64,000 nt of DNA from Oopsacas minuta (Eukaryota; Animalia; Porifera). A program made the translations under genes and the position numbers. Positions 3,907-42,435 of the stretch are shown piece after piece. Position 1 is the first letter of the stretch, and every line of letters starts with the position of its first letter. The DNA is taken from assembly GCA_024704765.1 (NCBI GenBank), contig JAKMXF010000364.1, forward strand, positions 62,001 through 126,000. Reading direction: 5' to 3'. The notes below the pieces were generated by a model. It did no database searches and was not told the DNA's origin. It worked only from the letters and a program-made list of their open reading frames with translations.

Positions 3907-3979
3907 TATAATAATTATTGTAAATATTTTCGTTTCTTCCAATTACTGCAATATTTGTACGCATCATCACATATTCAAC

Positions 3980-11376: not shown

Positions 11377-11388
11377 TATGGTAAGCTA

Positions 11389-12778: not shown

Positions 12779-12780
12779 TA

Positions 12781-13400: not shown

Positions 13401-13494
13401 TAATAAATGAAAGGCATAATTCTTATGCTTTGTTAACCAAAGTCTAGCTCGGATAATGCTTGAATTTAGTGAAATTTCATTCAATTCAAATTTA

Positions 13495-16723: not shown

Positions 16724-16762
16724 TTACCTATTTCCCCATTATGGCCATTTTGCCACACGGTG
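16724..16762 (-). repeat. 3' TIR of RAG1-like copy C (heptamer-23-9mer)
   Basis: Minus strand reads CACCGTG TGGCAAAATGGCCATAATGGGGA AATAGGTAA. Confidence 0.8.
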
Positions 16763-17592
16763 CTCAAAAAACTCTGTATTAACCATGGGCACGACACCGG
16801 AGGGACACATGGCACTATGACACTGGTAAACTCGTATTCACTACCTCTAAACAACATCAAATGAAATCTAAGTAATATACATTGTCTAACAAGGTTTCTG
16901 TTCCTTGGACACAATACATCTGATTGTATGTTATCGAACATGGTGATTCCGAATATGAATCTCATTATTATTCAGAACCTCACAATTTCCTAAAAATTAG
17001 GTCAAAAGATTGAAAATTACTAATACACCCAAATTTTCCTGTGGAAATTGCTAGTAGTAATTAAAGAACAGTGAAGATTTGCACTCTAATATGTATTTGG
17101 ATCCTACTACACCGTCAACAGCTCTATTTCGGTAAATTGATCAAGATACAAATGAAATCATGAATTAAACTATAAAAGTAGAGAAAAATTCTTAAAATGT
17201 AGTGTCCATAGAAATTTACAATACACCGTCAGATTTCTATTATGTATTTAATTGAAATAGATTGAATTACGTGAAAGATTTTCTTGGGATTTCAACACAA
17301 TTGCACTTTGTGAGCTGGATAATGTATAATTGTGACGTGTTAGAGAAAATACTTCGAAGATTTTGAATCGGTATATTGGATGATTATACAGGATGCGATA
17401 TATTTATGCAGTAAGGGAAACAGAAATTTTTTCAATATTTGTTGTACAGTGTATTCTGGTCAATTTCCAACAGAAGACAGAGTATTTTCAATGGAAATTC
17501 CCATCCTTAGTGATTAGATATTTGTGATATTCACTAATACAGTCGAATCTTGCTTAATGGCAACCCCAGAAGCGATCACAATTTATCTGGAG

Positions 17593-17782
17593 CAGGGTTT
17601 CATCAAGGTTCTCAGGGGCATACGTCTAGAAATGGGCTCTAACTTATTTCATACGTCTTGACTATACATTTTGTACTACGATCTAAGAGTTTCTACCCTA
17701 GATATATATATTCGTACGTAGAGATATATTTGCCCAAATTAAGCGCCTGTAGTCCCACAGTATACGCCTGAATGCCACCCTG
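17593..17782. mobile_element. hAT (Charlie/Buster-type) MITE
   Basis: Ends CAGGGTTTCAT / AATGCCACCCTG. 8-bp TSD ATCTGGAG / ATCTAGAG (7/8 match). Confidence 0.7.
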
Positions 17783-17961
17783 ATCTAGAGGGTCTGGACT
17801 CCTCAGGTTTGCATGCATAGTTTGTATTTATATAAAATTTACACAAATGTTGCAACACTCTGGCTTTGTTGGCTCCCAGCTTTGATCTTGTCCCCTAAAA
17901 TATGAAGCCTATGTCTGACATGAAGTTTAGTGATAGGAAAGGTTACGACAAGTATCATATA

Positions 17962-18873
17962 CAGTCAAGGGACAAAAGTATTCGACCACACAAATATATT
18001 GTCATAAATTGTATACTCTTTCCCTCTCCTATATATTGTGTAGTCTATATTCGTAGCTGCAATCTAGTAATTTGCATAGAATAACATATGTTTTTCAAGA
18101 ATTTCAAAAAAATATTTTCGATTTACACTTTTTGAAGGTGTTCATTATTAATAATTATTAGATAATTATTGATAATCAAATATGTGGTAATTCAAAGCCT
18201 ATTAAGAATCTATAATTTCTGACTTGATATTTGAATTCTACGTAGGCGAGTTACCCCAGATTGAAATTTCCAATCGAATTGAACAACTTTTACTAAAGTT
18301 ATAGAAGAATTCCAATTTGTGCCATTTGTGCCACCTTTTGCCCAAGGTGGCACAAGTGGCCGCTACCAAGAAGTTATTTTGTAATTCAAGGGTTAGCATA
18401 GTTATATCATTCGAAAATAGTACTTTGACTTATTCCTCCTAACCCTAGTTGATTTCCTTGTAGTGGCGCTTTTTCCTGCCACCTGTGCCACTTTTTCAAA
18501 AAGTGGCACAAGTGGGACAAATTGAAATTCTTCTATAACTTTAGTAAAAGTTGTTCAATTCGATTGGAAATTTCAATCTGGGGTAACTCGCCTACGTAGA
18601 ATTCAAATATCAAGTCAGAAATTATAGATTCTTAATAGGCTTTGAATTACCACATATTTGATTATCAATAATTATCTAATAATTATTAATAATTAACACC
18701 TTCAGAAAGTGTAAATCGAAAATATTTTTTTGAAATTCTTGAAAAACATATGTTATTCTATGCAAATTACTAGATTGCAGCTACGAATATAGACTACACA
18801 ATATATAGGAGAGGGAAAGAGTATACAATTTATGACAATATATTTGTGGTCGAATACTTTTGTCCCTTGACTG
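17962..18873. mobile_element. 912-bp foldback (Tc1-type non-autonomous) element with ~370-400-bp near-perfect arms
   Basis: TA|CAGTCAAGGGACAAAAGTATTCGACCAC ... GTGGTCGAATACTTTTGTCCCTTGACTG|TA. The arms are reverse complements with only a few mismatches. Confidence 0.93.
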
Positions 18874-19675
18874 TATATTGAACATAAAGCATTTTCTGTC
18901 AATTTGTCCAAGTTGATTGAAGAATTGGTTAAGAGCTACAAACTTGAAATTAGCTATATAGGTTCAATATGGTCCATCTTAGAACATTTTAGATTTCTAA
19001 GTGAAACTTGAAGCATCTCTGAGATAACCTAACGAAATTTTCTATCCCATGATAAATGGAATAGGTACACTAGATTGAGGTATTGGTTAGAGCTACAATT
19101 TTGTGATTTCTTGAAATGTGAATAGTCGTACATGATTTTAATATGTAAGCGATACCTCATAAATTCTCCAAGATAAGTGTAGAAATATATTAACTCATGA
19201 GATTTGATCGTTTATTAACTGAGATTATCTTGCTATTTCAACTGTGTGGCTTTAACACAGGTTTATTAGAATGCAAAAATATTCTATAAGTACAATTTCG
19301 CAAATTCTCAAAGTACCAGTTGAATAAACGTTGATCTGTCTTGTGGATTATAATTTTATGTAGTAGGTATATGTAGCCTTTGTAACCACTTTATTGAGTC
19401 GTTTTATCGGTTTAATTACTTATGGATAATCATATGCGGGGTTCTTTAATTTTAATTAATTATTTTTATTAATAACAATCATGATTTGAATAATATTATA
19501 TGATTAATTAATTATCGTATTCACCGTCAACAATCTCATCAATGACGTTCAATATACAAAAATTAAATTATTCAATTGAGGTCCACACTTAGCACTTTAA
19601 CCAGAAATCATAGAATTGGATTCCAAACTTGGATAAGTACAATGCAAATATGAAGGGAGGCACATCGTAAATGTA

Positions 19676-21016
19676 CAGGGTGTCTCAAAAGTTTTTTCAC
19701 CATTAGTATTTCAATATATTTGAACCGAAATCAGTCTACCTCATTTACTACCTACCCATTTCTTTTAGCATTGTCAATTTATAGTTGATTAATGTTCTCA
19801 ACCATGAGTAGTATCAAACATTTAATTTTGTGATTCATTTTGCGATACTTTGTATAATTATCAAATTTCAATATTATCGATGTCAAAATGACGAGATTAT
19901 CCATCCGCGAGAGAGCGATAGGTATGCTACTAGCTGGTTCCACTCAAAGAACAGATGCTGACACACTTGGAGTCACAATTCGAACCGTAAAGAATTGGAA
20001 CAAAAAGCAAATAGCTGGAGAAATGCTCAATGACAAGCCTCGTTCTGGACGTCGGCCTAAACATTCCTGGGTCCCAAAATAATAATTCGAGAATCCATAG
20101 GCAAACGATGGCATTCAACTCGGAAATTGGCGAATATATTTCAAGTAAATGTGTTGCGATTAGCAAAGATACTGTCCACTGTTATTTACACAATTCTATT
20201 GAGGCTAAAGCGTATAAACGCCCATCAAACCCTAAATTCACGGAAGTACAGAAGTCTAAAAGGGTCAAGTTCTGTCTTGAGCAAAAATCTTGGACTTCAC
20301 TTGATTGGGAGCGAGTTTTCTTCAGTGATGAAAGCCCCTTTGAGCTTTTTTACCCTACAAATTCACAGAATGATCGGGTTTGAGACGTCAGTTCGCGTAA
20401 TATCACTCCAGTCGAAAAGGTCAAAAATCCTCCAAAATTAATGGTCTGGGGAATGATGAGTCATCGTGGACTATCAGAACTCCATCTAATCTCTCCAAGA
20501 AAATCTGTGAATGCGGACTATTATATCAATGAAATACTGGATAAGTGCTGTCTCCCTACCTATAAACGTAAGAAGATGGAGGGCCCCTGACTCAGAGGAA
20601 ATTGTATCGAAAGATATCCGACACTATTTTTATGCAGGATGGAGCCCCTGCTCATACTGCGATAAAGACACAGAAGTGGCTTTCTGATCATTTACCAGGA
20701 TTCTGGGCGAAAGATATCTGGCCTAGTAACTCGCCAGATTTGAATCCTATAGAAAATCTGTGAGCCATTATGCAGGCAGAGCTGGACAAGAGGAAGCTCG
20801 CTACTAATCTAAAACAACTCGCGAAAATCTTGGAAAATATCTGGAGTGGTATTAACCCATCGATTCTCCAGAATTTAATCGATGGAATACCAAACCGCAT
20901 TAATTCTTGTATTGAACTTAACGGTGAATACATTGACAAATAGCCTAATGATTCTTTACATTAAATACAATTTACTGGCTTGATGAATAAGGTGGAAAAA
21001 CTTTTGAGACACCCTG
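19676..21016 (+). mobile_element. Tc1-like DD37E element, transposase pseudogene (~19888-20943)
   Basis: TIR CAGGGTGTCTCAAAAGTTTTT(T)C(A)ACC with TA TSDs. FFSDESPF, MQDGAPAH...SPDLNPIENL with 37 spacing. Confidence 0.92.
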
Positions 21017-21594
21017 TAAATAACAACAACAGTACAGTACAACCTCTAAAAGTGATGACATTAAACAACAAGCAAACACCTCTAAAATATGAACACTTTT
21101 CTCGATCCCAAGTTACTCCAATTGTTTACAAAGTGGTCACCCCTTGTGAATGTGAACACCTCTGAAATGTAAAATGTGAACACTTAGTTTGGTCCCCAAT
21201 GTCTAATTGCATAGAATTTGACCTCGTAAAAATAAAAGGGGTTTTTCAGGCATATCTTTAACTAGCTGTCAGCTTTGTTATCACGCTAGCTGTGAAAGCT
21301 GGGATGTTTGTTGATGTAGCTTCAATATACTAGAGGCTTCGTCATACAATGGGCAGAAGAGACAACATATTTGCCTGGACAATGCTTCCACACATTTGTG
21401 TAAACATGGCGGTCCTATAAACCACATTTTCAGAAATCTGTATTCATTGTCAGTTGAATTGTTCCGGTCATGAAAAGTTAACACTTCTCAATAGCGAACA
21501 TTTTTGCCGTTCCACAAGGTGTTCACCTTTAGGAGGTTTACGGTACTAAGAATTGTTAATTTGTATTATTTTCGATCCATGGTAGGAAAGGGAC

Positions 21595-21939
21595 AAGAAC
21601 TTATTTCGACATTTTCAACATTTGGATATATACATTTCAATATAAGGAATAGACTTGGAATCGAGAAGGCGACAAAACAAATATTTTTCTACTGAATGCT
21701 CAATTTACAAGTATCTAAATACAACCCCAATGATATTTTAACATTATTTTACTTTCATATTCATACAAAGTTTAGATTTAGCCAAAATAACTACCTAACC
21801 ATGTGATTCTCAGTATATTTGATCTATCAGGCAAAATATCTGATAAATAATAGAAAAATCAAATAAAAACAAATCTGATTTAAATAAAATACACCCGATT
21901 CATGTTTTATTGTAAAAGTCACGATTTTTATCAACCCTG
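21595..21939 (+). mobile_element. hAT 3' fragment (dimerization-domain tail plus 3' TIR)
   Basis: FSTFGYIHFNIRNRLGIEKATKQIFFY followed by end TTTTTATCAACCCTG. Same TIR as 26163-26568. Confidence 0.6.
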
Positions 21940-22919
21940 AGATTCATATGTATTGTCTAAATTAAATGCACATGTTGAAATTATCCATATTCTTATATGA
22001 AGCTGCAAAATGTTTAGATTGGAAAAGATGCATAGCCTAAAAACAAATTTCGATCTTATAACTAATTTCTTATCAGTCATATATGAGGGGAAATAGAAAA
22101 GTTCGTTTACTTTAGTTCAGAAAAATTAGTATATGTAAGAAGCAAATCTTCAAAATGACTTTTCAACGTAATTTCCTCTCACTGGCATACACTTCTTCCA
22201 GTGTTAAACCCAACTCAAGGATGAACTTTCATTCCATTGTTCGGGGTAGCGCGTACACACTGATAGATAGCTCTTGCAATGGCTTAACTAGATAAATAAT
22301 GCCTCCCTTTCAATGAATTGTAGGGAATAATAAAGTCTCTAGGCGCTAGATCTGGAAATAGGGCGAATGGAGAGAGACTGGTTAATGGTGTGCTTCCATT
22401 GAGTAGTCTGCTGTATTGTCTCAAGATCATAGCTAAATATACAGGTTTCAACATGGTAACTGTCGTGTCGAGAAATTTCCTTTGGCCAGTTTTATATCGA
22501 AAAATGATTTCTTGGGAAATTCTACTCCTACTCGTTTCTGATGAATATTCAGCATTTTTGGCAGAAGCCTTGCTATATCCTAGATATTCGTGTAGAATCC
22601 CGGTAATCTATGTGTTGATGTACGGAGGTATCCTCTAAAAGCTCCAACGTAATTCATCTGATGGGACTAATCCATTTTACACGATCAATTTTCTGCTGAA
22701 TTACAGGAGTGATGTGCGACACTGCATTCGTTATCTTGAAGACTTGTACTCCTGATATACCAGAAGTGTCAATTATTGTATCAAAATTTTGAAGGAGTAT
22801 TAAACATATCATTTCATATTATCGTTATATTTTATCATGAATGAATTTTCTATGGTTGGATTGATTATATCCATGTACTGTGTAGTTAACACTATGGTCG
22901 ATCTTAACTTACTCATATA

Positions 22920-23066
22920 CAATGGAACACCGCTTCGCAACCACACCTGAGTACGGACCACCCCTATATTATAGCCATATTTTATCATTTCGTTTAACTA
23001 CTCCACCCCGAGATTACGACCACATTTTTTGATCCCATGGGTTGTCAAAATCCTGTGGTTCAACTG
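22920..23066. mobile_element. pogo/Tigger-type MITE
   Basis: TA|CAATGGAACACC ... GTGGTTCAACTG|TA, 147 bp. Confidence 0.5.
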
Positions 23067-23509
23067 TAGGTGCCATGTTTTTGTCTAACCAGAATTACTA
23101 GCATTTGTCAGTATGTATTTGACAGACAGTTTTATTGCGTTGTTAAACATTGGTAGGTATTTGTCAGTGGACCAGTCAAACTTATGCTAGTGCTTTAGGT
23201 TGTCTCATACCAATTTTTTGACTCAACTCTTACTAATGACAACTCGCATCAATTGTTCAGTCAACCCGTATCAACTCAAACAATGTTTAGCCGGATAGGG
23301 CACAATGAGGTTACATGTGGAAGACAGGTTATTAAAATGTGGCGTAATTACGTTGATGAGTTGGGGGACGTGCCACACCTGGACCCAACCTCGCGCCACC
23401 TCTGTGTCTAACCGATTCCATCTCTGGTGATTGGTAAGATAATTTTGGCGAAAATTCGCCCATTATGAATCCATGGACGTCGGAAGTAGGGAGTCTGAGT
23501 CGGCTAATC

Positions 23510-24990
23510 CACAGTGATTTAAAACGGGATTTGGTAAGGAATAGGCAATTATACGAGTCCTATCGTTGTATAATGTATTATTTCCTATATATTATCGATA
23601 CCTACGAGTCGATTGCGAGTAGTTATTTTCTTTGAAGATGTCTACATTTTCTTGATATGAAGTCATTGGAGTGTTAAAATTCACTTAAAATATGAGTTAG
23701 TAATAATTGATTCAGCAATAGACTCAAATCATTTCTACACATGACTATAAATCTACTTATCTAGACAAGTATACCAACTATGTGGGCCAGGTTAAGGAAC
23801 GAATAGAGCATCTATATTAGATGGGTGTTGGATACTATCTTGTTTGCAACAATTCGATAACGATGAATGACCAGATTGACTACATATTTCACACGTTCAA
23901 TTTAGCCGAGAGCTTCCATAAATAGGATCGCTCAGGCAGGCTAATCATAAGAAAACATTCATAAGATTAGTCCCGAAACTATTTCCTTGCCACATTTTCC
24001 CGATATTTTGAACAATTTGTCCGAAGATTCTGTCCCTTCTTTAGAGAAATCCTTCAATCCGAATCCAACATTGGACTCTCAAATTAACTCCCCAGAGTGG
24101 GTTAGTATTTTGTTTCATGTTGGTGTGATACTTGCCCAGAGAAATGAATCAAAATCAAAAGATGAGTATTTTTGCACAGATTCCCCAATTCTGGGGTGTT
24201 GACTTTCCTGCTTGAAGTATATTATTTGAGGATTGTAGAAAGTTGTATATGGATTTTTGTTAAAGCTGGTTAATGGCAATTACAATGGTAGATAATACAC
24301 ATTTTAGATAATCAGTTTGGTCAGAAAAGGCCCTTCGAGCAAAATTCTCGCTAGAAGTCGTTCCGCCGCTGGGGTCAGGTAGGTCAACTTTCAAACCAGC
24401 TTTCCTGATTATGAGATTCCATACACTTCATGGATTCTTTAATAGTTAGAGAGTTTTAGGCCTACTCAGTTTATTGATATGAAGATGATATACCAAAAGA
24501 TTATACTACCTAAATTGTTCAAAATCCTAAATAGTAAATTTTCTATATTTTCATAAAATATTTTCACCGAAGATGCATGTATACGAATAAAGTAGAGATG
24601 CTGAAGTTATGTTGATAGTACAGATGGGTGTATGGTTAAGTTAAAACGATCGTTTGATGGAAGTGCAAATAATGAATCAATATCATCAATATCTAAGAAT
24701 AACTGAGCAGCATCTGTAATTTTTCTTTTGATAGGGAATCCATCAGTTACCAATTCTCTGTCGTTCAAATCTTTATGTGTGGCTGTACACATTAGGCAAC
24801 TTGCGCCTCCAGCAGTAGAAAGAATAGCTGATATCTTCCCGTCAAACCATAGATCATACGATATCAACAATAATTAAACTACCTTCTATATATATGCTTT
24901 CTCCAAACTTAGATGTTTCTGGATTGATAACATCGTCCGTGAATGTACGAATATTTGCTTCGTATTACTTCTCAGTATACAGAAAGATGT
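23510..24990 (-). pseudogene. RAG1-like element copy B: C-terminal half of transposase plus 3' TIR
   Basis: Minus strand DGKISAILSTAGGASCLMC, GGTTSSENFARRAF, ITPT*NKILTH, SKEGTES, and tail CEICSQSGHSSLSNCC (23846-23893). TIR CACAGTG ATTTAAAACGGGATTTGGTAAGG AATAGGCAA at 23510-23548. Confidence 0.88.
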
Positions 24991-25723
24991 AGGGGTTCAT
25001 TTGGGGGTGGCCCCAGAATGAAAATTTTTATCTTAAATTTTAGAGGGCTCTTCTCTATTTGGGGTGCTTCCCCACCAAATTTTATATAGTGATCTATAAT
25101 CCTGAGGTCTCTCAAGTTTCGGGGTTCCCTCCTCCAAATTTTATAACTTATCACATATTTTAGATCGCCCTCTATATTTGGGGGTGTCCTCTCCCCAAAT
25201 TCAATATTGTTATTTATTGTTCAGTTTGGGGTTTTACCATTCTTTTCAATATCGGAGTTTTCCCTCTAAACTATGTAGGTCAACCCACTTTCTTGTTATC
25301 AAAATTTCAACTACCAGATGTTTTCCATAAATATATAGTGAGAAATATGTAGTGTATTTATGAAACTCTAAATCTCATAGTGATTGAAAATGTTGTAAAT
25401 GTGTTCAACAAAAGTTTGAATTGTATTTAACAAAGAAAGGTCTTAGGTGTTACTGAAGCAATTGGTTCATAATGGTAGCAGTCATTATGGAGGTAGATAT
25501 TGAGAGAGCTTGAAACGTTCTTTCCTCTCTTAGGACTGAAACCTTGGTGAGAAATTTTCTGCCATTCTTTATCCTTGAAGACAAAAATACCTGTTTCTAA
25601 CCATATTGCAGAAGAAATAATTCAACGTCACTAGCCCAAACTGTTGTTGCTGACATGTTCGTCTTAGAAAAATATCCACTCATCTTTTGGTCATGTTTTA
25701 TCTCAACATAATTATCACATAGG

Positions 25724-26823
25724 CAGGGGCGTAGATCCGTGATTTTTCTGGGGGGATGGAGAATTTAAAACTAGCACTTTTCTGCATATGATAAATATGA
25801 GTATGCCATAATCGTAGTCATTAAACTTCCTAACTCGACAAAAAGATAGACAATAATAAAAACAGCTAAGAACATAGATCATAGTATATATAATATACTT
25901 TATACTTGTTAGTATGAAAAGAACCTAATGATTTAATATATCTAGATTCCAGTAAAAATTATTCGAAATTGCCAAATATTTTTCGACTTATTTCATTTCT
26001 TGTCGAAAACTATTTTGCTAGTGTCGCGATATTCTAAATTAAAATGGCCAATACCAAATTAAAGAAAAACTAGTGACAATTATTCGAAAAGACTCTACGA
26101 GTGCGAATTATTAATAAGCACGATAGAGATTTTTACAAGTATACATTTAACAGGATTGTAACCAGGGTTGTTTGATTTAATCAAGTGATTTAAATCATTG
26201 ATTTAAATCAAAATCCGAGTTTTATCAAAATATCTTATTAAAATTCAATATTTTGATGTTTTGATTATTTTCTCAAGCTGATTATGTCCATTCTGATATT
26301 ATTATGGATACCTATCGAAAAACTATTCATTTGTACAGTCAGAATCGCTTATCGTGAACCCCTTCATAATGACTTGGCTTAATACAAATCTTATGTAAAC
26401 CGAAGAATTGGGACCTGAGAGGGTTGTTCATAATGAACAAATGTTCATATTAAGCCGGATGGTTCAGTCAGCTGTCATACAAAATCCGATTAAAATAAAA
26501 TAATCCGATTAAATTCAAAAATCTAATTTTTTGATATTTTTAATAAATCATGATTTTTATCAACCCTGATTCTATAATATATATTTCAATGAGTAGATAC
26601 GGAACGACATCTCAGATTAATATCTTTGAAAACATACTCGAGAACAGTGAAATTTGAATATAACAAAAGGATAATCTGCTGAAACCCAAAAGATTTGAGA
26701 GCAAAAATAATGTAGATGTATCTCAAAAGTTAAAATGTAGGGGGGATGATTACATAGAGCATCCCCCAAGCTCATAAGTGGGGGGGGATATATCCCCCCA
26801 TCCCCCCGGGATCTACGCCCCTG
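25724..26823. mobile_element. Non-autonomous hAT element
   Basis: 15-bp TIR CAGGGGCGTAGATCC. Perfect 8-bp TSD CACATAGG at 25716-25723 and 26824-26831. Confidence 0.92.
26163..26568. mobile_element. hAT MITE nested in 25724-26823
   Basis: Ends CAGGGTTG / CAACCCTG with subterminal gatttaaatc repeats. TSD degenerate (5/8 match). Confidence 0.6.
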
Positions 26824-30563: not shown

Positions 30564-31308
30564 ATGACTCAATACGAGAAGAGGGAAATTGTGAAGACAC
30601 TTCTACAATCCGGAAGCATTTGCCAAAGGAAATTTTTGTTAATTGTGGAATTTCCTTAGCTACAGTTTACAATGTTAAACGCCGATTAGATGAAGGTGTA
30701 CCGCTATTTCACCAAAGTGCGCAGGGAGACCCAATAATTTGCGATCTTCCATCCAATTGTCTATTCTTCACCAGGTACGATGTAAACCATACTTCTCTTC
30801 GCGAACATTAGCAAGTCGTACAGGTAATCAGTCTTCCTATCAGACTGTCCGGAGAGTGTTGAAGGACCAATCTTACACCAAACCTTACCATGCTCAGATC
30901 CCTATGTTGAGTGAAAAAATCGCATGTACAGGGTAGAATGGGCATAAAAGTACAAATACTTGAAGAAACAATGGGTTCAAACAATATTTCTTGACGAGAT
31001 GTCAATCTGGCTCTCAAGGGGAAGATTAAGGATGCAGACAAATTCCAACAAAAAAACGATCGCCCCAACAACGAAGAATGTCCCAAAGATACACGTGTGG
31101 GCTGCATTCTCATCTATGGGTACATTGCAATTGTGCGTTTTCACTAACAATATGAACAGTGTAATGTTTTTAGATATATTGGAAAGATATTTGATAACTC
31201 AAGCACAGGTATATCATGAAAGTCAGTGGCGATTGGTGTGGGACAATGATTTAAAACACATATCGCAAAAGGTCCGTGCCTGGTTGGCACAAAATGTACC
31301 AAATTTTC
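30564..31308 (+). pseudogene. Tc1 (DD34E-type) transposase fragment, 3'-truncated
   Basis: IFLDEMSIWL, PKIHVWAAFS, WDNDLKH. Related to the 11389 element. Confidence 0.8.
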
Positions 31309-31770
31309 AGGGTTCTATCTACTGGGGGGTGGGGGGAAGCTTCCTCCCCAAACTCTTCAGCTTCCCCCCCAAAATCTCATAAATTGTACTAGTAATCGCA
31401 ATATATTATTCAATAGATAAATTATTAGAATATCAATTCATTGTGAAAATACTATTTGAAATGTAAATAAATAACATGTGGGAAACTTGAATCACATTTC
31501 ATACTATTTGCAACTGGGAAATAATAACATATGTTGGAAAGTACACACAGTAGTTTGAATGCAAAGAATAGACAAAAAATAGATTTCATTATTAATGGTT
31601 TGAACTCGTTCTTGTTTGTTTGAATAATGTTAATTTCAAATTTCAATTCGATCGAATACATATAGCTCTCACAATATGAATTTAAAGAATCAATCAAAAA
31701 TAGTTCTATTTGCGGTTTCAGTGATGCTAATATTAGCACCAATTTAAGTTTACTTGAGAGCGTCACAGAA
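31309..31770 (-). mobile_element. Possible hAT 3' fragment
   Basis: FKLLCVL...PVANSMKCDSSF resembles a hAT dimerization domain. CAGGG-start GC-rich terminus at ~31309. Confidence 0.35.
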
Positions 31771-32330
31771 TTCTCCGAATCAAATTTATTTTATTTCGTC
31801 AACACAATTCAGTTATGCTAAATCTGATTTCTCATTTTCGTCAGTGTATCTTTATTACATTTGGATTCAAAGTTGATTTGATTAATGGTACTTTAGAGGT
31901 ACAATATTTTTAAAAAAGAACTTCCAAATGGCCGCAAAAAAAAAAAACATCACAAAACACAACTTAGAAATTAATTCCAAAATGGCATTATAATATCTAG
32001 AAAGACATATTAAAATGATACGCCCCGAAACAGTGCGCAACATGAAAATTTCTAGCGAATTCCATTGTCACCTTTTTGTTGCTATGCAATTTATATGCTA
32101 AATTTATCTACTCGATTGCAGCATTCCAATTACCAATAAATGTAATATATAAATACATGATTAATATGACATTAACAAATTGAATTTGCTGATAATCAAC
32201 CGTTTTCTACGCTTTTATCAATGACTCAAGAACTAACTTTCCCTAACTCTCATCTTGAATTTGCGAAGATTTTGAAGACAACAACAACTGTATCTCGACG
32301 ACACTCAGTTTCTTTGAGCAGAACTTTCAA

Positions 32331-34415
32331 ATGGACTTCGAAGAAAGGAAACAATTGGAAGCAACGCTCCTCCGAGTAAGAAGCAGGATCAGGAAGGCAA
32401 AGAAATCGCTAGATTGCTTAGAGGGAGACTGGTGGCATTGTGGTATATCCATGGAACCAGAGTTGAAGAGGAACCGTTTTTATGATACCGTTGAGCTGTC
32501 TTCAGATGATGAAGAAGTCATATCCACACTCTCTGCAAACCATAGGAAGAGTATTGACAATCTCACGATGCAACAACAACGCTCACGACTCTCAAATGTC
32601 TTGGAATCTATCAAAGCACTCTCAATCGTTGAGAATACTTCAGAAATCAAGATAGCTGCACTTGCCTTGCAACTACTATCGAACCAAACAAAACAGCGAG
32701 AAATAGCTAAAGTTTCAAAATCTGTAGTCTATGACAAGTTTTCGGGTCAATTCGGTAAATTGTTGAAGAAAGAGCTCGATGTTACCAAGACAGTGTTCCT
32801 TGTAGATCTCCTAGAAATTGGCAGGAGGAAATACACACAACTCCGACATCACTTGCTATCTAGCGATATTCGTTTCCCGGCATACTATAGGGTAGTAGAA
32901 GAAAGAAACAGTATAATTTTACGGTCGGATATTCAGATGTACCCCAATCCTGAAACTCCACTTGGTGTATATATACCATATGCCCATCACGTCCGCCATA
33001 CTTTTTGCAGGATTATGTCCACGCTACCGCCACCTCCAGCTCAAGATTATCCCCTACAATTCCAGATAGCAGACGGACTAGATGGCTCTGGAAGTCACAC
33101 TGTATATAATCAATCAAACACGAATACAGATACTAAGTCGTTTATCTTATTCTGTTTCAGAGCTGTAAAGGTAATAAGCAATAGCGGTCGCGAACTCTGG
33201 AAAAATAACGCTCCCAATTCTCCTTTTGCTCAACGTCCGATTTTCCTCCTCGCTGCGAAAGAAAACGAAGCTAATATCAAGCGATTTATGGACGATCTAA
33301 TCAATACTGATACTGATCTTATGAGAAGTGAAGGATTTACTCTTGGCCCTGATCAGCAAGTACGAGTCGACATTGTTCGATCAATACTTGATGGGAAAAT
33401 GGCAGGAATTCTATCTGGAGCAGGTGGGGCAAGTTGTCAATTATGCACAGCAACTCATAAGGAACTCAGTGATCGTGAGTTGATAATACAGGGATTTCCT
33501 ATCAACAGGCACATTACTGATGCAATTCAACTTTTCTGTGAAATAGAAGACAGCCATTCGTTCTTCTCACTCCCTTCAAACCAACGTTGTAACATAACGC
33601 ACGAACCAACCTCAACAATAAACATCCTTCCAGCATCTCCGTTACACTCGTACACTGGCATTTTCAGGTGGTTCAATCTACTAATTTATCATATGAATTG
33701 TGGAAAACCCACATGGTCACCGACATCTTTGACGATAAAAAATTCAATGATATTTGTCAGAAATCTGATTGGAGGGAAGACAGGAATGAGGATAGATCAG
33801 CTGAATGCAAGTGGAGGTACTAGCTCTACTAGTAGTGTAGCTCGTCGAGCATTTTCCTGTGATTCGAAATACATTGAGTGTGTATTGTCAGTTGTTGAAA
33901 CAGAACACAAAGAAACACTTTCAAAACTACATACACACTTGTCAGCTATTCTTCGAATAATCAATTCAGACAGGATCATTAACACCGAGGTCTTTGGTGA
34001 TCTATGCACCGATACATATCTCTTGATCGTTGATTCATTACCTTGGGTGAGCATTACTTCAACATTACACAGGGTATTAGCTCACTCAGAGGAAATTTTG
34101 AAAGGGTCCAACCTTGGGCGAGGTCTGAAATGTTTCTCTGAAGAGGGATCCGAGGCATGCAACAAGTTACTAAGAAAGTATAGGGAGAATCTTGCAAGGA
34201 AGTCTTCATTTGAAGATAATCCAATGGACATTATCGTGAGACTGGCCTCTGAAAGTGACCCTGTATTGAATCAATTTCGTTCAAGTTTAGTTTGTGAAAG
34301 GTGTGGGGAACACGGCCACACAAAAAGAGCAAAGTGTTGTAGGGATAATACCGAAAATAGATTACTAGATTCTTCCATAGACGAAATTGTTGATTCACTT
34401 ATAATTAATTCATAG
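32331..34415 (+). CDS. RAG1-core-like (Transib/RAG1L) DDE transposase, 694 aa
   Basis: NBD-like aa ~72-128 and DDBD-like aa ~148-196. DGLD251GSG, NSPFAQRPIFL, ILD354GKM, C369QLC372, SPLH439, VARRAF, TLH580RVLAH585, SEEGSE608ACNKLLRKYRENLARK, SDPVL, and tail C655ERCGEHGHTKRAKCC670. Confidence 0.93.
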   Translation: MDFEERKQLEATLLRVRSRIRKAKKSLDCLEGDWWHCGISMEPELKRNRFYDTVELSSDDEEVISTLSANHRKSIDNLTMQQQRSRLSNVLESIKALSIVENTSEIKIAALALQLLSNQTKQREIAKVSKSVVYDKFSGQFGKLLKKELDVTKTVFLVDLLEIGRRKYTQLRHHLLSSDIRFPAYYRVVEERNSIILRSDIQMYPNPETPLGVYIPYAHHVRHTFCRIMSTLPPPPAQDYPLQFQIADGLDGSGSHTVYNQSNTNTDTKSFILFCFRAVKVISNSGRELWKNNAPNSPFAQRPIFLLAAKENEANIKRFMDDLINTDTDLMRSEGFTLGPDQQVRVDIVRSILDGKMAGILSGAGGASCQLCTATHKELSDRELIIQGFPINRHITDAIQLFCEIEDSHSFFSLPSNQRCNITHEPTSTINILPASPLHSYTGIFRWFNLLIYHMNCGKPTWSPTSLTIKNSMIFVRNLIGGKTGMRIDQLNASGGTSSTSSVARRAFSCDSKYIECVLSVVETEHKETLSKLHTHLSAILRIINSDRIINTEVFGDLCTDTYLLIVDSLPWVSITSTLHRVLAHSEEILKGSNLGRGLKCFSEEGSEACNKLLRKYRENLARKSSFEDNPMDIIVRLASESDPVLNQFRSSLVCERCGEHGHTKRAKCCRDNTENRLLDSSIDEIVDSLIINS

Positions 34416-34683
34416 ATTCATTAAAATGTTGAATCTATACATTCTGATCCAAATACTATACAGGGTAATAGTATACATACAGAGTAAGAGATTTTTCTTA
34501 TGAAGTGGAAATTTCTATGAGTTTTATTGAATAATTTTTTAAATGTGACGTCATCATAATATGTGATGACGTCATATCCAGAAATCTAGAAGCCATAGAA
34601 GAAATTTGATTACCCCATTCGATTCCTCAGATACGATAACCTATTCGCAAATAATACATTGCATATGGCTATCTGGTACTAGA

Positions 34684-34722
34684 ATACCTATTCTTTACTA
34701 ACTCCCATTTTAAACCACTGTG
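34684..34722 (-). repeat. 3' TIR of RAG1-like copy A (perfect RSS heptamer)
   Basis: Minus strand reads CACAGTG GTTTAAAATGGGAGTTAGTAAAG AATAGGTAT, ending ~300 bp after the stop codon. Confidence 0.88.
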
Positions 34723-34919
34723 CTTACTAATGAACCACAATTGTTAAAAATTAGAAAATGTCAGTAATTACGTCATAGCTAGGTTTATAGTCGTGCTACT
34801 AAAAAATCATTGGTATTTTTGAAACCTACAGTGTCGATTTAGTATATGTAAGTATAATTGTGGTGATATTACAAATTCATTTACCTATTTCCCCATTATG
34901 GCCATTTTGCCACACTGCA
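34723..34919 (+). repeat. Second copy of the copy-C 3' terminal ~197 bp, including its TIR
   Basis: Aligns by eye with 16566-16762 (cttacta.tgaaccacaattg...ccccattatggccattttgccacac). The heptamer reads TGCAGTG on the minus strand. Confidence 0.85.
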
Positions 34920-35034
34920 TTATATTTGGTAAATACCCAAGTCAAATTCTCATCTATTAACACATACTTCCATAATATGGATGGCACTCCCGACCTGACC
35001 CCCTGTGTAGATGTTGCAATGCACATGACCCTAA

Positions 35035-36300
35035 CACGGTGGGAAACATGGCTGATTAGGGTAAAAATTTCATATTCAAAGCTCCAAGAAAGTCGTATTT
35101 CTGAATTCATCATAGTTGGAAACACATAATTATGTATTTTGATGCAGAATTTTCGCTTGCTCATGACTGTGCTATGAGCAGATAGTGAAGTGAAAATTCT
35201 CTTGATATCAGGAATGTTATTAATTCTAATAATAGCTACTTTCAAAGTAATTTTCCATGGTTAGTTGGAATGGGACATAACCGTTTTGTATATAATGTAA
35301 TCAATATAGCTTTTCTATAATCATAGAAAATGTTTGCGTACATTCTGTTACAAAATGCTTTATAAAGACCATTATTACCGAACTACTAAATATAGAATAT
35401 GTTAGATTGAACGAATTAGAAACTGGGCCAAACTATTTTCGAGGGCACTCGAGGCCGAATGGTTTTATGGCTGAAACAGTTAGAGAAGATGTTTGCCTTC
35501 AAGATTTTACTAGTTATAGGATAGCAAAACGTAGCAATCGTGACCATAACACCAACGAAAGAATGCGAAACCTTCTGGAGGAATTTTAAAGTTAATTTTT
35601 TATGTGATAATTAGCTAATTTGAAGATTGAAATGCACTAATGTAATCGAAATAACAAATAATATTATCTAGAATTAACTTTTATCCTGAAATCAGAGCAT
35701 TTCAAGGGTGCATGTTGAAATATTTATGGACAAAGGCCAAATATCCTTGCATTCCTTTTTCAATGTCTGATGAAATTTTATCACCCATCAATTTATCTCC
35801 CATGCCCTCTTCATAGTTATTTGTGTGTCTTACGCTGTCTCATACTATTGATATATCATTTGGATGGCGGAATGAAGAAAGGCTGCTTTCACATCATCAA
35901 GTTAAAACTATGTACCGATTGAGTAATCTCACGCTTGAGAAGACTGCGTTTCAAATAGATTATCCATTCGGTGAATACGGTACCTCTACCACTGGTAATA
36001 TAGCAAGAAAATGTTTTCTCAATGAAAAATATTTTATTGCTTCTGCTACATCCACGATGATTGAAGAAGACCGACTTACTCTTAACACTATTCAAACAAA
36101 TCTCTCAGTAATATTGCGGGTTTATAATTCTCATAAAAGGATAGACATTGATAAACTCTACTCCAATTGCAAAGATACTTATGAGGAAAACCTTGTAAAT
36201 TTCCTTGGGAAAGCATTACACCGTCTCTTCGTAAAATATTTACGCATTCTTCAGAATTAATCAGTGGATTAAATGACGGTTTCGGATTGAAGTTTCAGTT
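35035..36300 (+). pseudogene. RAG1-like copy D: candidate 5' TIR plus internally deleted transposase fragment (~35770-36300)
   Basis: CACGGTG GGAAACATGG... at 35035. CPLHSYLCVLR..LIYHLDGG, YGTSTTGNIARKCF, ITPSLRKIFTH. Confidence 0.75.
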
Positions 36301-36315
36301 TTCAAAGCTTGCTTA

Positions 36316-36552
36316 TACCAAATTCTTGTGACTATCCCTCAGACGTCTTGCAAGGTTGAGCGAATGTTCTCATCTGTTAAGAGAATAAAAACTCATTTGC
36401 GCTCACAAATGAGCACTGTACGTCTCAACCATCTTGCCCTGTTATCTATTGAAAAAGATATTGCAGAAACACTTTGCTATAATCATGTGATTGAACATTT
36501 TAAGTAGATGAAGCACCGCCGCTTTCTTTTGTAATGTCAAATACTACCCCTG
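36316..36552 (+). pseudogene. hAT C-terminal dimerization-domain fragment
   Basis: ILVTIPQTSCKVERMFSSVKRIKTHLRSQMSTVRLNHLALLSIE. Confidence 0.75.
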
Positions 36553-36965
36553 AAATGAGTTTAGTATCTTAATAAATGCTCTTACTATATGGCAGTCTAG
36601 TGCTCTCTAGCTTAGTAATCTGGTACTTGATGAATTAAAAAGGTATACATGTAAGAAAAGGAGACTGGGTCGTACTTGTTATACACAAGTAATTAACTTT
36701 TCAAAAATATTTATCCCTACAATTGCCCTCCCGAAATACCTCTTGGGCCCCTCAATTTCTTGCTCTAGTACGTGCCTGTTTCTGGGTGTTACTAGGATCC
36801 TGAGTGAGATATTGCAAGATGTACTAACAGACGTTAGATCAGCAGTAGATGTAGTAGAGAGCATTAAAGCAGAGTTTGAAGAGTGGGATGCAGATGCAGA
36901 GCCTTGGATTTGGACCAAGTTAGGAGATTTGTTAACACAAATCTAGGAATACTATTACAATAATA

Positions 36966-38275
36966 CAGGGTGGCTGTCAGGTTCTGATACAAAGGATTTT
37001 CTCCATTATAGTTTCACTACTTGGAATATAATGTTAATATTGCATATACGACTATTTACTACTGTTATGATTCAATTACTAAAATAGTTAATCTATATAT
37101 CCTCCTTTTATGGAAATTACAGCTTTGAGTCTGGTATGGAACTTTCCACTACGATACGCAGGGTTTCCTGGAGGTATTTCTCCCATTCGTGACACAAATA
37201 CTTTTTCAGGGACTTTATAGTGCTGTGTGAAACCGAACAAGCCCTATTCTTCAAGATGGACCAAAGAGAATAGTCCATTGGATTTAAATCGGGACTATAT
37301 GGAGGCCATTCTTCCTTTCGGATAAAATCGGGGGGTTTGCCCTCTAACCAGTCCTGTGTGGTAATCGCCGTATGAGCAGGAGCATCATCTCGTTGGAAAA
37401 CAAATGGCTGTCCGGAAAACATTGTCTGGCTCAGATCTTTTATAACACCTCTAGGATCAAGTCCTTGTAAGTTTTCGCGTTGATTTTCACTCCAGCAGGT
37501 ACGAAAATCAATGGCGTGCGGCCAACAGCAGAGACACCAGCCCAAATCATCACTGAGAGAGGTTTCATTTTCCGACTGATGTACCTAAACTTATCAGGGA
37601 TGTCTGAGCTAGCTGTAGAGATCACACGATCATTTTGAACATTCGTAGCCTCAGCTATAGTGAAAATCTTTTCATCTGCAAAGATGATATTTTCGAGTCC
37701 GCCGGTAGCGTGTCTTGCAAGTACGCCTTGCTTCTCAATAATCGTTTTGTCTTGACTAACTCTGAGAAGAACTGTACTTTCTTTCTTTGAAAACAACGCA
37801 TTTTCAAGTCACGGTGTACCACTTTTTGGACAGTTTGACGTACAACTTTCAACTCCTAGGCCATTTTTCTCATGGATAACCGTGGATTTCGCCGATTCCG
37901 TTCTCTCACCCTCTCCTTGAGGGCTGCGGTTCTCACAGAACAAGGACGACCAGATCTTGGTTTGTCGTTTGTGTCCCCAGTTTCATTGTAACGTTTCATT
38001 GTCCAGTAGATGAATGCTCTCCGTCCTTTAGCAATATTTAACATTTTTAAAATCTCAGGAGGGCTTTTTTCCGCCGGGTATAATTCAACAATTACTAATC
38101 TCTCATGACTCATGGTCAATAGTATAAATTTTTGTGAAAATTGTAGGCTAAATCGAATATGAATACATTAAGAAGGTTATATGAAAAGTCTTAGATAGTC
38201 AAAATACTGTAAATACATTACGATCAAGGTTATATTGTAATTGAATTTTTGTATCAGAACTTAGCAGCCACCCTG
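36966..38275 (-). mobile_element. Tc1/mariner DD37D (maT-type) element, frameshifted transposase
   Basis: TIR CAGGGTGGCTG(TC/CT)A(G/A)GTTCTGATACAAA, flanked by TA and CA. IIFADEKIF, QRDDAPAH, SPDLNPMDY. Sister family of 2593-3906. Confidence 0.9.
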
Positions 38276-39009
38276 CATAGCTAGACCGCTATTATTTATG
38301 AAATAATTTAGCCTCAAACAAAGTTCTGAACAACTATTCGATTTCTGTTCAATACCTATATTCGGAAATATTCAGTTTGTCGATCACTAGTAAGTAGATT
38401 TAAATGTTAATGTTCTTACCTTTCAAGAGCATGTATCACAGTAAAAAGAAGCTTTCCATACGGTCTGAATGTCTACGTCAGCACAATAGCAATGAACCTA
38501 TTCTGAGCAGTTGTCACATTGTACCCAATCTGATTGATTCTTTCCAAGTTTCCTCTAGTTCACAGATTCTGGTTCTTTCTTGTTGCATATACTGCACAGA
38601 GTATCGGACTAATCAGAGATGTTGGTTGTGCTAGAAGAGCGTGTAGAAACAGGAGAAACGCCAAGAAATCCCTCCACGCTTGAATAAGAACTGTTGATTT
38701 ACACCACCTAACGTAATTACTTTAGTCTCAACTAAAATTCAGGTACAAATAATCTACTAAGTTCCTATACGTCTGTACAGAGCAACAGATATAGACGAAA
38801 TCTGGTACGGTTAGCCATTGGGAGTAAGTATGTATATACCAGGCTTGCCCACTGTTCCAATTGTTTTTGAATTCCATAGCAATTAATATAGCGAGATACC
38901 ATTGACTTCTAAAACTTAATTGACACAATATACCAGTAACTTCTAAGTCTAAGACTCAATATTGGTTTATATAGAACAAGGGTCCGGATGAAATTTAACC
39001 CGGACCTGA

Positions 39010-39410
39010 TAGTTCTATAAAATGACTGAGGCGAATAGTATATTTGAAAACAATAGTTGAGATGAATTAAATGTGAACACATTCATGTGTTGTTAATGGT
39101 ACGTCTTTTGGAGCAATAACGAAGAAACTATGAATGTTATGGCTCTCAACTTTATGCCAAAAGTTCCGTAATAGTCAACTTCCTATTCTCTAATATTATG
39201 TTTCATTTGATTTCAGTTAATACATGAGATAGTTTGACATTTTTTCATATATTTTATGACTATCATCAATATAACAATTGTCAAAATATCTCAAAAAGTA
39301 TGAACAAAAAGCAAATGAACTGTATAATTAGTGAATAGGAAGTTAATTATTACAGAACTACTGGGAAACATTCAAATATACTATTCGCCTTTGTCATTAT
39401 ATAAAACTGT
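39010..39410. mobile_element. Foldback MITE-like element, unclassified
   Basis: IR agttctataaaatgactgaggcgaatagtatatttgaa / ttcaaatatactattcgcctttgtcattatataaaact, plus an inner IR (cttcctattc / gaataggaag). Confidence 0.5.
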
Positions 39411-40595
39411 CAATCACTAAAACCACTGAGAACATGGTTTGAACAGTTTGAAAAGCAGCATTTTTTGTTCAAAAATAGCTCTTGCGAAACCACATGATGA
39501 GAAATCATATTTCACAATAGAAATATATACTTCGCAATTATATCCTTAATTAATTAATACATACCTCTGTTCCAAAACATATATTCCTGGAGATATGTGA
39601 CAAAAATGCATTTCCCCTTGGCCTTCTAGTTTTCAAGCCTTCTCGGTGACAGATACAATGTTATATTATAAGTAGGCCGTAGGCCATGCTACGCCATTTA
39701 GTATGTTAGTTAGGTCACGGGTCCCCGAACACGAACATTTGGCTGCATGACAGCGAATAGAGGCATTATGAAGGAAAAAATTATGTACACCCATAACCTT
39801 AGAAAATCCAATTATTCATTATTTAGACTACGGATATGGATATAGAAAATGGAACTGAGCTAATGCTCCGAAGCTAAGTTTAAGAATTAACTACTGTAGA
39901 ATATATTTTGACTTTTCCTGAAATGGCCATGCAATATGTAGACTAGTATCCAATTATTCAATTACAGATGATACCCTAAGCAAGAAGCTACTTAAAAAGG
40001 ACTACTAAAGGAGAAACGAAGTATCAGTCTTATATTTAACAAAATTCTTGATATTTTGGCCGCTTTGGAGGTCGTGTCTTATTACCTCTCTTAGAATGAA
40101 AATTTGTAATGTCAAGTTAAAACGAGTAGTATTTACTATTTGTTCATTCATTAGCTTAGAGTTAGACCAAAGGATTCTTCATGCATGCTAATATTGTTGC
40201 CAGGCAAAGTCTTCAAAAATATTTCTATTCTTATTATAGGCACTTGAGTTTATATATATATACATTATGATTTGTTATTTGATGACTATTAAAAGTTGCA
40301 TGTATTATTCTTATATTCGAGATTCGTAGAAATTAGACATCAAAGCATAAATATGTGATTTTTAATTGCCAATGGTTATGCATTATTATGACTTTCTTAA
40401 CCGCTACTAAAGGATTGTCAATAAGTCACTTTATTATAATCCTTAAGGGTAAAAGAGATGCTATACGCATATAATTCTGTATCATATGTGCATTACTTAG
40501 ACAGGAATAATATTACAAAAGGGCTATTATTAGCTACAGCCCTATGACGTCATAACATGACTTAGTGCAGCCCTATAGATAATCTAATGAATTGC

Positions 40596-42394
40596 GGACA
40601 ATTTGTCGCATGGACAATTCGTCGCGGACAACTCGTCTCGTGGACAATTCGTCGGGCGGAAAAAGGAAAAAAATTAAGATAGTAAGCAGTAAATGGAAAT
40701 GATACTTATGATACTTAGTATATGATGTAAATATTAAAAATCAAAATTATATGCTATCTCTCAAAGATATTCGATGGTTTCGCAATTATCATATTTGATA
40801 ACTATGTTCTATATCCTTTCTTCATGTTCCACACTCGATTTTGATCGCTGCCCTTCAGATTTCCTCCTTCCCACTTTGCATAAATTGCCTCTTGAAGTGA
40901 TTGCTCTTTTTGCAAAATTCTTAAGAGTTTTATGAAATCTGGGTGTGGATGACCCTTGCCATGACTAAAAGCATTGTGCCAACCTTCAACGCTATTATTT
41001 TTTCGAGGGATTCGATCCATCATTCTTTGATGCATGTTCCATACTCTGATAGGAAAAGGTGGCGTCCTACGAGACTATTTGGTAGCTATTTTCCAATATA
41101 GTTGTCTTCAATTATTTTGCAACTGTCTTCCCAGATTGAGGATATTCATGCATCAAGATGTTAAAACAATCAATAACATCGCTCTCAGGCACGAAAGCCA
41201 GGCAGGGTAACATCTTCAGCTTCAAAGCTAAATCCCTATCTTGTTGATGCGCCGTAGCTAATCCATTAGCTTGAATTCTCCGATAAATGCTCTGTTTTAA
41301 GTGGAAGAAACATCCATAGACACATGCAAGGAAAGTATTTTCCAATGCATTTATCGCGGCCTTATCGAAATCCACCATTATGGGTGTAGGATTTAATTCG
41401 GACTCTAGTTGGAGCAGTTTGGAGAGCATTCTTTCATAGGTCTCTTCAGTCTTAGCCTGAAATAAAGCATAAACACAAGGGAATATATATCCATCTCTTT
41501 GTGCATGGATAGTGTAAAGTTGAAAGAAATGTTCTGGAGCAACTTTATATGTACCATCACAGTGCCAGTTGATACTTTCTTTAAGTTTAGATAAAAACTT
41601 TGAAGTTCCAAAGAGAATCATTCTGTGATCATCGCCTTCTCCTGAATCAAATAATAGGAAGCTTTCATCATTGAGTGTAAATTTAAATCTATCTGGAATT
41701 ATTATTTCAGCGCAAGAACTTGGGTTTCCATAAAATTCTTCTTCTCTTCTCTTACACCTCCTAATAGTTCTCTTGACAGAGTCAAGCGTTGGTAATTTGT
41801 TAATGGATTCTGCTGTCATTCCTTCTACTGAAGTTGCAAGGAGATTTCGGGTACTTAATTCAGAATTTCGAGCTATTCCTTTGAGGTTCGTATACCCTCT
41901 TAGCATCTCGACACGAGTTATATCAGAACTATGCGAATGCTCACTTGGTATTATTGAAGGATTTGTAGGTTTGACTAATTGATTATTACTTGTGTGTAGC
42001 CTCGCTTTGCAGATTCCGCGCTTTTCACACACCCAGTATTCGATATCGTGAGATTTTCAATTCAAAGTATAAATAAAACCTTGAATGCTTGCTTTATCTT
42101 TATTTATTTCACTCGGAATCCTCTCAATCGAACACGAAGAGGTTAAGGAAGTAGCCATAGTTTCTTGGTAGTAGTAAGACTTTTTAAATCCCCATTATTG
42201 GCTGATTTTTATACTATTTTGATCATGTTACAATAGACAACATACCAACCAGTTGACAATGCCAAACTTCAAGAGTGGGATATAAACAATTTACCTTTCA
42301 CAACCTCAATCAATACTTCTTATGAAACAAAGGCTAAATAGCGAAGTCATCAACAGCGACAAATTGTCCATGCGACGAATTGTCCCTTTACCCC
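40596..42394 (-). mobile_element. MULE (Mutator-like) FLYWCH-DDE transposon, pseudogenised (CDS ~42158 to ~40720)
   Basis: YWVCEKRGICKARLH...HSH (FLYWCH), WHCDGTYKVAP, IMVDFD, GCFFHLKQS, NNSVEGWHN. Terminal GGACAATT(C/T)GTCGC repeats are inverted at the two ends. Confidence 0.88.
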
Positions 42395-42396
42395 AA

Positions 42397-42435
42397 ATAC
42401 CTATTCCGCCATTTTTGTGCATTCTCCCCACTGTG
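42397..42435 (-). repeat. Orphan RAG1-like-element TIR (end E)
   Basis: Minus strand reads CACAGTG GGGAGAATGCACAAAAATGGCGG AATAGGTAT. The MULE abuts it. Confidence 0.75.

Follow-up and report, generated by a model that had tools for sequence, protein, structure and literature searches.

The 64,000-nt stretch of Oopsacas minuta DNA analyzed here (the window, in its whole length; approximately 34% GC) is dense in eukaryotic transposons, among them Tc1/mariner-like, P-element-like TNP, and MULE elements. It also contains five sites that resemble a recombination signal sequence (RSS). The RSS of V(D)J recombination has the heptamer CACAGTG and the nonamer ACAAAAACC, the latter being contacted by the GRPR motif in the nonamer-binding domain (NBD) of RAG1. 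At the five sites in the window, a heptamer is followed by a 23-nt spacer and a conserved 9-mer, and four of the sites are located downstream of RAG1-like reading frames in the right orientation. The five sites are very probably the 3' termini of transposons of the Transib superfamily, in which each element has an asymmetric pair of ends with a 14-nt (5') and a 23-nt (3') spacer. The assignment to RAG1-like Transib transposons, already made in the initial annotation of this DNA, is supported by the frames upstream of four ends and by the homology of the transposase. The copies are designated A, B, C1, and second C-type copy:

16724 to 16762, minus strand: 3' terminal repeat of C1 (CACCGTG, 23-nt spacer, AATAGGTAA), with RAG1-like frames upstream on the plus strand
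23510 to 23548, plus strand: 3' terminal repeat of B (CACAGTG, 23 nt, AATAGGCAA); the element is on the minus strand
34684 to 34722, minus strand: 3' terminal repeat of A (CACAGTG, 23 nt, AATAGGTAT), identified by exact pattern match and contig divergence
34723 to 34919, minus strand: second C-type 3' end (terminal inverted repeat, TIR, at 34881 to 34919; heptamer mutated to TGCAGTG), internally cut by the insertion of A
42393 to 42435, minus strand: solo Transib 3'-type terminus (CACAGTG, 23 nt, AATAGGTAT, and 4 nt; 43 nt in all), identified by exact pattern match

Exact matches to CACNGTG-N23-AATAGG occur at four positions in the window (16762, minus strand; 23510, plus strand; 34722 and 42435, minus strand), and none were found in 100 dinucleotide-preserving shuffles. 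The fifth site (34919, minus strand) was recognized by direct reading; TGCAGTG is followed there by a spacer and AATAGGTAA identical to those of the 16762 end. When the spacer was allowed to vary from 8 to 30 nt, the window held length 23 only. This comparison with shuffles, proposed in the initial annotation, was run on the window. The five ends described there were recovered as four exact sites and one site with a mutated heptamer; the quoted sequences are correct, all five quoted spacers count 23 nt, and re-reading confirmed the exact RSS heptamer CACAGTG claimed for three ends (23510, 34722, and 42435). The five ends represent approximately three independent lineages, A and B being related and C being present twice. 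The claimed divergence of the spacers between subfamilies held in part: they are less alike than the 9-mers, but they exceed background, and the spacers of A, B, and C have AAAAYGG in common at spacer positions 5–11.

Element A (31546–34722) is 3177 bp long and contains a single open reading frame (ORF) of 2.1 kb, which is followed by approximately 300 nt up to the 3' end. Twelve loci (L001 to L012), whose transposases are 39% to 92% identical to that of A (ORF A), were fetched from related sponge assemblies. In addition to its 3' repeat, A has the following features:

31546 to 31575, plus strand: 5' terminal repeat of A (CACAGTA, 14-nt spacer, AATAGACAA); homology to the complete element of L001 begins here
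32331 to 34415, plus strand: ORF A, an intact Transib transposase of 694 amino acids with an NBD-like region, the residues D251/D354/E608, and a C-terminal CxxCxxxGH...C tail
34651 to 34674, minus strand: subterminal 3' blocks AGATAG (element positions 49–54) and AATGTATTAT (63–72), identified by end alignment

Logan contigs from four sequencing runs of one sample were mapped over positions 31300–35300. Contig pieces start exactly at 31546, and the 5' end in the O. minuta locus L009:2330 differs from that of A by a single base. At 34722/34723, the contigs of three runs split into unlike flanks (15+5, 7, and 14+7, respectively), and the consensus agreement past this point is only 0.41–0.48. Contigs also diverge at 34917–34919 and upstream of 35044, and all three positions are therefore termini of multi-copy mobile elements. 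Both ends and the ORF of A are intact; it is bordered on the right by internal sequence of a C-type element and on the left by unrelated sequence. In A-type 5' ends, a second AATAGA is located 11 nt past the first, at a spacer of 25 from the heptamer (window 31567–31592; L001:3297–3320). The sites at 23510 and 34722 were also considered as the two ends of a single 11-kb element. This pairing was rejected because the real 5' end of A is at 31546; both sites are 3' ends, and the two copies are oppositely oriented.

A tblastn search with ORF A revealed three further RAG1-like copies in the window, to which these features belong:

14945 to 16372, plus strand: degraded RAG1-like transposase frames of C1 (tblastn)
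23834 to 24988, minus strand: degraded RAG1-like transposase frames of B (tblastn)
35035 to 35063, plus strand: 5' terminal repeat of a fourth, internally deleted copy (CACGGTG, 13-nt spacer, ATTAGGGTA)
35803 to 36292, plus strand: RAG1-like frames of the fourth copy (tblastn, tblastx)

The units of heptamer, 23 nt, and 9-mer at 16762, 23510, and 34722 lie downstream of the C-terminal end of the frames and are therefore 3' ends. Copy B has AATGTATTAT at element positions 63–72 (window 23572–23581). The frames of C1 are 26% to 52% identical to ORF A over three pieces (36% over the longest). Among 66 retrieved proteins, no close relative of C1 was found (best identity 42% to 44%), and a complete C-family element was not obtained; the end of L012 is the most C-like among the fetched loci. 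The 193-nt segment bearing the 34919 end is 92% identical to 16566–16758. Twelve contigs diverge at 34917 and go on with TG, so the heptamer of the C family is CACAGTG and the copy in the window is mutated. The second C-type copy extends only to 34723, the point at which the terminus of A begins, whereas C1 runs on with other sequence at this point; A was therefore inserted into a C-type element. Contig depth drops to a low-copy level between 34918 and 35051, and six contigs, which carry CACAGTG, diverge just before 35044 at the fourth copy. In two of the four runs, the summed contig depth of the C-type fragment 34723–34917 is several-fold above that of element A. The data suggest that the C-type end is used by an abundant family, which is probably non-autonomous, similar to miniature inverted-repeat transposable elements (MITEs).

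The public proteins closest to ORF A are from O. minuta (92% identity) and from ENA assemblies of sponge samples; a profile scan of metagenome contigs with the transposase alignment yielded no relatives. Five of the fetched loci contain complete elements of 2.9 to 3.5 kb, which have one called gene and are flanked by matching 5-bp target duplications (TAAAG in L001, AACTA in L002, CTTCG in L004, GTCAG in L005, and AGGTT in L008). No matching duplications were found at L011 and L012. The 3' ends of all five complete elements have a 23-nt spacer followed by an A(A/G)TAGG-like sequence, and at their 5' ends the heptamer and the motif recur, separated there by 14 nt (13 nt in L004). The pair of 5' and 3' spacers is 14/23 in element A of the window, L001, L002, L005, L008, and L011, 13/23 in L004, and 14/24 in L012. 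With a further 23-spaced 3' end in L010, 13 of the 14 3' ends examined have a spacer of 23 nt. A CAC heptamer begins every 3' and 5' end apart from the mutated copy at 34919. In the alignment of 5' with 3' ends, one clean 9-nt gap is found, with matching sequence on both sides including the 9-mer (A, L001, L005, and L008), and this 9-nt asymmetry is kept even where the transposase of a relative is no more than 39% to 41% identical to those of the window. The uniform 23-spaced signal postulated initially thus describes the 3' ends (23 nt in 13 of 14) but not the 5' ends, in which the motif is located at 14 nt (13 nt in two cases). AAAA(A)T runs occupy positions 30–37 in the majority of 5' ends.

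Conservation along the 3' end was calculated from eight largely independent 3' ends as their mean pairwise identity (element positions counted from the heptamer):

1 to 7, heptamer: 0.96
8 to 30, spacer: 0.46, with positions 12–15 reaching 0.66
31 to 39, 9-mer: 0.71
40 to 48: 0.32
49 to 54, AGATAG: 0.61
55 to 62: 0.34
63 to 72, AATGTATTAT: 0.57
73 to 80: 0.33

Background pairwise identity is 0.32–0.35. The conserved distal 9-mer is A(A/G)TAGG(T/C)A(T/A), and it is more conserved than the spacer (0.71 vs. 0.46); equal conservation of the two had been named as an outcome that would speak for a plain contiguous repeat. The bipartite end proposed initially holds insofar as the 9-mer is a conserved island, but further blocks were found at 49–54 and 63–72, and sequence adjacent to the heptamer is conserved as well. 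The 3' end is multipartite rather than bipartite, four or more conserved blocks being located at constant positions. In each element, the first five bases of the spacer (GYTTA in the A-like lineage) match at the 5' and 3' ends. For the C-type and 42435 ends, the shared sequence is limited to the heptamer, AAAATGG, and the 9-mer. The block AATGTATTAT at 63–72 is present in the 3' ends of A (window 34651–34660), B, L001, L004, L005, L006, L008, L010, and L011, among them relatives with transposases of no more than approximately 40% identity to ORF A, and absent from the C-type and 42435 ends, which likewise lack the AGATAG block at 49–54. Both blocks could be an additional binding site of the transposase or of a host factor, or a signal of the coding strand.

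ORF A gave a weak Pfam match to RAG1 (2e-05). A profile of 11 proteins matched HzTransib (6pqn, 1.2e-42), the amphioxus protein BbRAG1L (6b40, 8.5e-17), and RAG1 (5.7e-14). Profile positions 70–361 align to residues 369–692 of mouse RAG1 including the helices of the NBD, in accordance with the NBD-like domain that the initial annotation had ascribed to the transposase. D251, D354, and E608 do not vary across the 11-protein alignment and align to D600/D708/E962 of RAG1. The residues C655, C658, G659, H663, and C670 are nearly invariant and form a CxxCxxxGH...C tail of the CCGHC type (CTT1). With regard to the alpha11-alpha12 region of Subgroup I Transibs, approximately 35 residues at profile positions 406–455, which are extra compared to HzTransib, align with BbRAG1L. 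An AlphaFold model of the transposase (mean pLDDT 64.5) retrieved HzTransib (1.7e-16) and RAG1 structures in Foldseek. Alignments to RAG1 chains of approximately 610 to 620 residues, several of them from entries solved with the NBD, extend over approximately 640 to 665 columns, those to chains of approximately 540 to 550 residues over approximately 480 to 620. No RAG2-like gene was found, a feature that separates Transib from RAGL; element A has no room for one, and its complete relatives have one called gene.

The end at 42435, listed initially among the five element ends, adjoins a MULE element and not a Transib body:

40589 to 42392, minus strand: FLYWCH-MULE-type element with GGACAATTYGTCGC arrays at both ends, next to the solo Transib terminus but not itself belonging to a Transib

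The ORF at 41112–42032 (minus strand) is the remnant of a MULE transposase, the full-length relatives of which have FLYWCH and MULE domains. The GGACAATTYGTCGC arrays are located in inverted orientation at 40596–40653 and 42356–42385, and contigs of other copies of this unit diverge at approximately 40588/9 and at 42369/42392. Single-copy depth starts in the bin containing 42435. A target duplication of the MULE was sought at 40589–42392, and none was found. In L010, the same MULE family, again with GGACAATTYGTCGC arrays, is nested inside a Transib, the 3' end of which is regular (CACAGTG, 23 nt, AATAGGCAT). The end at 42435 is therefore regarded as separate from the MULE unit; its assignment to that unit was rejected, other copies of the unit ending at approximately 42392 and 40589. 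Positions 42393–42435 may be read as the terminal remnant of a Transib that was interrupted by the MULE. The FLYWCH-MULE family is thus located in or against a Transib 3' region in two assemblies (L010:1614–5828; window 40589–42435), which may be due to chance in a Transib-rich genome or to a target preference.

Several other repeats are present in the window. A near-perfect palindrome at 17957–18878, with 352-nt arms that are 98% complementary and 156 nt apart, is flanked by 41-nt inverted repeats and is probably a foldback or MITE-type element. Five elements of approximately 1.3 kb are bounded by inverted repeats of 30 to 35 nt (2586–3913, 11386–12781, 19671–21021, 36963–38278, and 60662–61988); three of them begin with ACAGGGTG, and one contains an ORF with helix-turn-helix and DDE_3 domains of the Tc1/mariner type (2753–3784). 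The ORF at 4779–6086 encodes TNP-like RNase H and GTP-binding insertion domains as in P-element/THAP9-type transposases. A pair of 625-nt inverted repeats (12779–13402 and 60656–61282; 95% identical, 47 kb apart) represents two oppositely oriented copies of another repeat family. Two diverged tandem arrays are located at 7467–8828 (period approximately 174 nt) and 1293–2017 (approximately 59 nt).

Sequences, spacings, element termini, 5-bp duplications, and transposase homology were observed directly; a possible mode of action follows from analogy with HzTransib, RAG, and BbRAGL. The 3' ends are composed of CACAGTG, a short conserved stretch, a variable stretch up to 23 nt, the 9-mer, and, in most lineages, AGATAG and AATGTATTAT; at the 5' ends, heptamer and 9-mer recur with 9 nt of spacer fewer (14 nt). 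A transposase dimer would place the heptamers in its DDE active sites and cut at the heptamer border by nick-and-hairpin, while the distal 9-mers would be read by the N-terminal NBD-like helices. Integration with a 5-bp stagger would result in the 5-bp duplication, and the 9-nt asymmetry would be accommodated as the RAG NBD dimer accommodates 12/23. Several observations weigh against this picture. No 5' end of B or C1 and no 3' end of the fourth copy was found in the window, a Transib body left of 42435 was not recognizable by tblastn with ORF A, and the flanks of element A do not match as a target duplication (GTACA at 31541–31545 and CTTAC at 34723–34727); the mismatch suggests rearrangement or recombination between copies after insertion. 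One 3' spacer has 24 nt and two 5' spacers have 13 nt (L004 and window 35035), and the 9-mer is weak in the most distant relative, L008 (ATTGGATGC). The maxima of the spacer lengths at 23 (10 sites) and 14 (6 sites) over 137.5 kb (window and loci), compared to 0.3–0.6 per length in shuffles, speak for the picture, but the loci were picked for encoding the transposase, and the histogram falls short of an unbiased genome scan. Finally, among the points against it, the GRPR of the RAG1 NBD is replaced by NHRK in ORF A.

The last point bears on what reads the 9-mer. Biochemical results on HzTransib, RAG, and BbRAGL would assign this role to the NBD-like helices, for which we see an even chance and no more, given the lack of GRPR and a 9-mer that, unlike the nonamer, is not rich in A/T. 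For the same two reasons it is possible, if on the whole not expected, that the 9-mer is read by the CCGHC zinc tail, by a different domain, or by a bending protein of the host, with a minor role of the NBD-like region: the proteins keep the CxxCxxxGH...C tail, and BbRAGL relies on its CCGHC tail and little on the NBD (PMC10462144). However, the BbRAGL tail binds the heptamer-adjacent TR2 and not a site 23 nt away (PMC10462144), and the NBD-like helices are invariant in the 11-protein alignment, as are several of their basic residues (R84, R86). A more radical proposal is that only the heptamer region is needed and that the 23-nt spacing was merely inherited from an ancestral end of approximately 70 nt, the 9-mer not being read at all. 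The spacer identity of 0.46 against a background of approximately 0.33, the AAAAYGG common to A, B, and C, and the reduction of the five ends to approximately three lineages would fit such inheritance. It is nevertheless very unlikely in view of the blocky conservation (40–48 and 55–62 at background; 31–39, 49–54, and 63–72 above), which holds across relatives with transposases 39% to 44% identical to ORF A, the absence of indels from 13 of 14 3' spacers, and the length difference between 5' and 3' ends (9 nt; 13/23 in L004) that is kept in complete elements. The asymmetry itself would be only apparent if both ends were 23-spaced with different distal motifs, AATAGGYAW at the 3' end and an A-rich AAAAATCAT-like motif, similar to the canonical Transib nonamer, at 31–39 of the 5' end, the AATAG at 14 nt being incidental. 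AAAA(A)T-type runs begin at position 30–31 in 7 of 10 5' ends, AAAAATCAT is identical in L004 and L008, and the published Transib 5' consensus is heptamer-23-AAAAAAATC (PMC1131882). The clean 9-nt gap with the 9-mer itself aligned (A, L001, L005, and L008) argues against two motifs, and A-rich runs are common in a genome of 34% GC, which makes this explanation improbable. We therefore keep the asymmetric 14/23 pair as the preferred reading of the ends. That the asymmetry reflects an enforced pairing of a short with a long end, imposed by a RAG2-less transposase through an NBD-like dimer, is doubtful and is put forward tentatively. If true, a rule of the 12/23 type, as enforced in V(D)J recombination, would be older than RAG2 and Bilateria and could be dissected in a one-protein system.

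The architecture of the sponge ends is known from other Transibs. In the account of Kapitonov and Jurka (2005; PMC1131882), the 38 bp of a Transib end consist of a heptamer, a variable 23-bp spacer, and a nonamer, and there are families with 5' and 3' ends resembling RSS12 and RSS23. The sponge elements agree with these TIRs in the CAC heptamer, the variable spacer of approximately 23 nt, a second 9-mer, the 5-bp duplication, and the RAG1-core-like transposase. The insect elements Transib5, Transib2_AG, and TransibN1-3_AG even have the same polarity, the short spacer being located at the 5' end and the 23-nt spacer at the 3' end (PMC1131882). In contrast, the 9-mer of the sponge elements is A(A/G)TAGGYAW and not the A-rich AAAAAAATC, their short spacer is 13 to 14 nt instead of 12 nt, the host is a hexactinellid, and additional 3' blocks are present at 49–54 and 63–72. 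The sponge ends lack an A-rich, AAAAAAATC-like nonamer; A-rich runs occur in them only past the 9-mer of 5' ends.

For Subgroup I, Tao et al. (2022; PMC9435367) state that every Transib combines asymmetric TIRs with a CTT1 tail and an equivalent of the NBD, and they describe two conserved elements with 4/13 spacers, a 9-bp asymmetry, in the TIRs of AanRAGL. The sponge elements share the asymmetric TIR pair, the CTT1 (CCGHC) tail, and the NBD-equivalent region with this group and the 9-bp difference with AanRAGL, whereas the motif sequences differ and a RAG2-like gene is absent; the likeness is one of features. Asymmetric TIRs, CCGHC tail, and NBD are also listed as known in Transibs by Martin et al. 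(2023; PMC10462144). The TIRs of PflRAGL-A described there are similar to the sponge ends in the heptamer, a heptamer-proximal stretch (TR2-like), an asymmetric spacer (difference of 10 bp), and a distal 9-mer-like element, and the GYTTA stretch of the sponge ends resembles TR2 of RAGL elements (PMC10462144). PflRAGL-A encodes RAG1L and RAG2L and keeps GRPR/K in its NBD, whereas the sponge element encodes one gene only and lacks GRPR, and its distal motif is not rich in A/T.

Compared to the RSS of V(D)J recombination, the heptamer CACAGTG is identical, one end has a 23-nt spacer and the other a shorter one, and a second 9-nt element is present. The differences are a 9-mer unrelated to ACAAAAACC, the replacement of GRPR, a length difference of 9 instead of 11 nt, the absence of RAG2, and the location of the ends, which flank mobile elements and not gene segments. 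A literature search yielded no paper on sponge Transib elements. Apparently intact and recently mobile Transib families of a glass sponge, an early-branching animal, thus join the RAG1 relatives with RSS-like ends, and they could provide a simple natural system in which to examine whether spacer lengths are already distinguished by a transposase that lacks RAG2. The accepted picture is unchanged, the architecture and asymmetry having been described in 2005 and generalized in 2022. While the layout and the 5'-short/3'-long asymmetry are already published for Transib (PMC1131882; PMC9435367), the host, the sequence of the 9-mer, the short spacer of 14 instead of 12 nt, and the additional 3' blocks are new.

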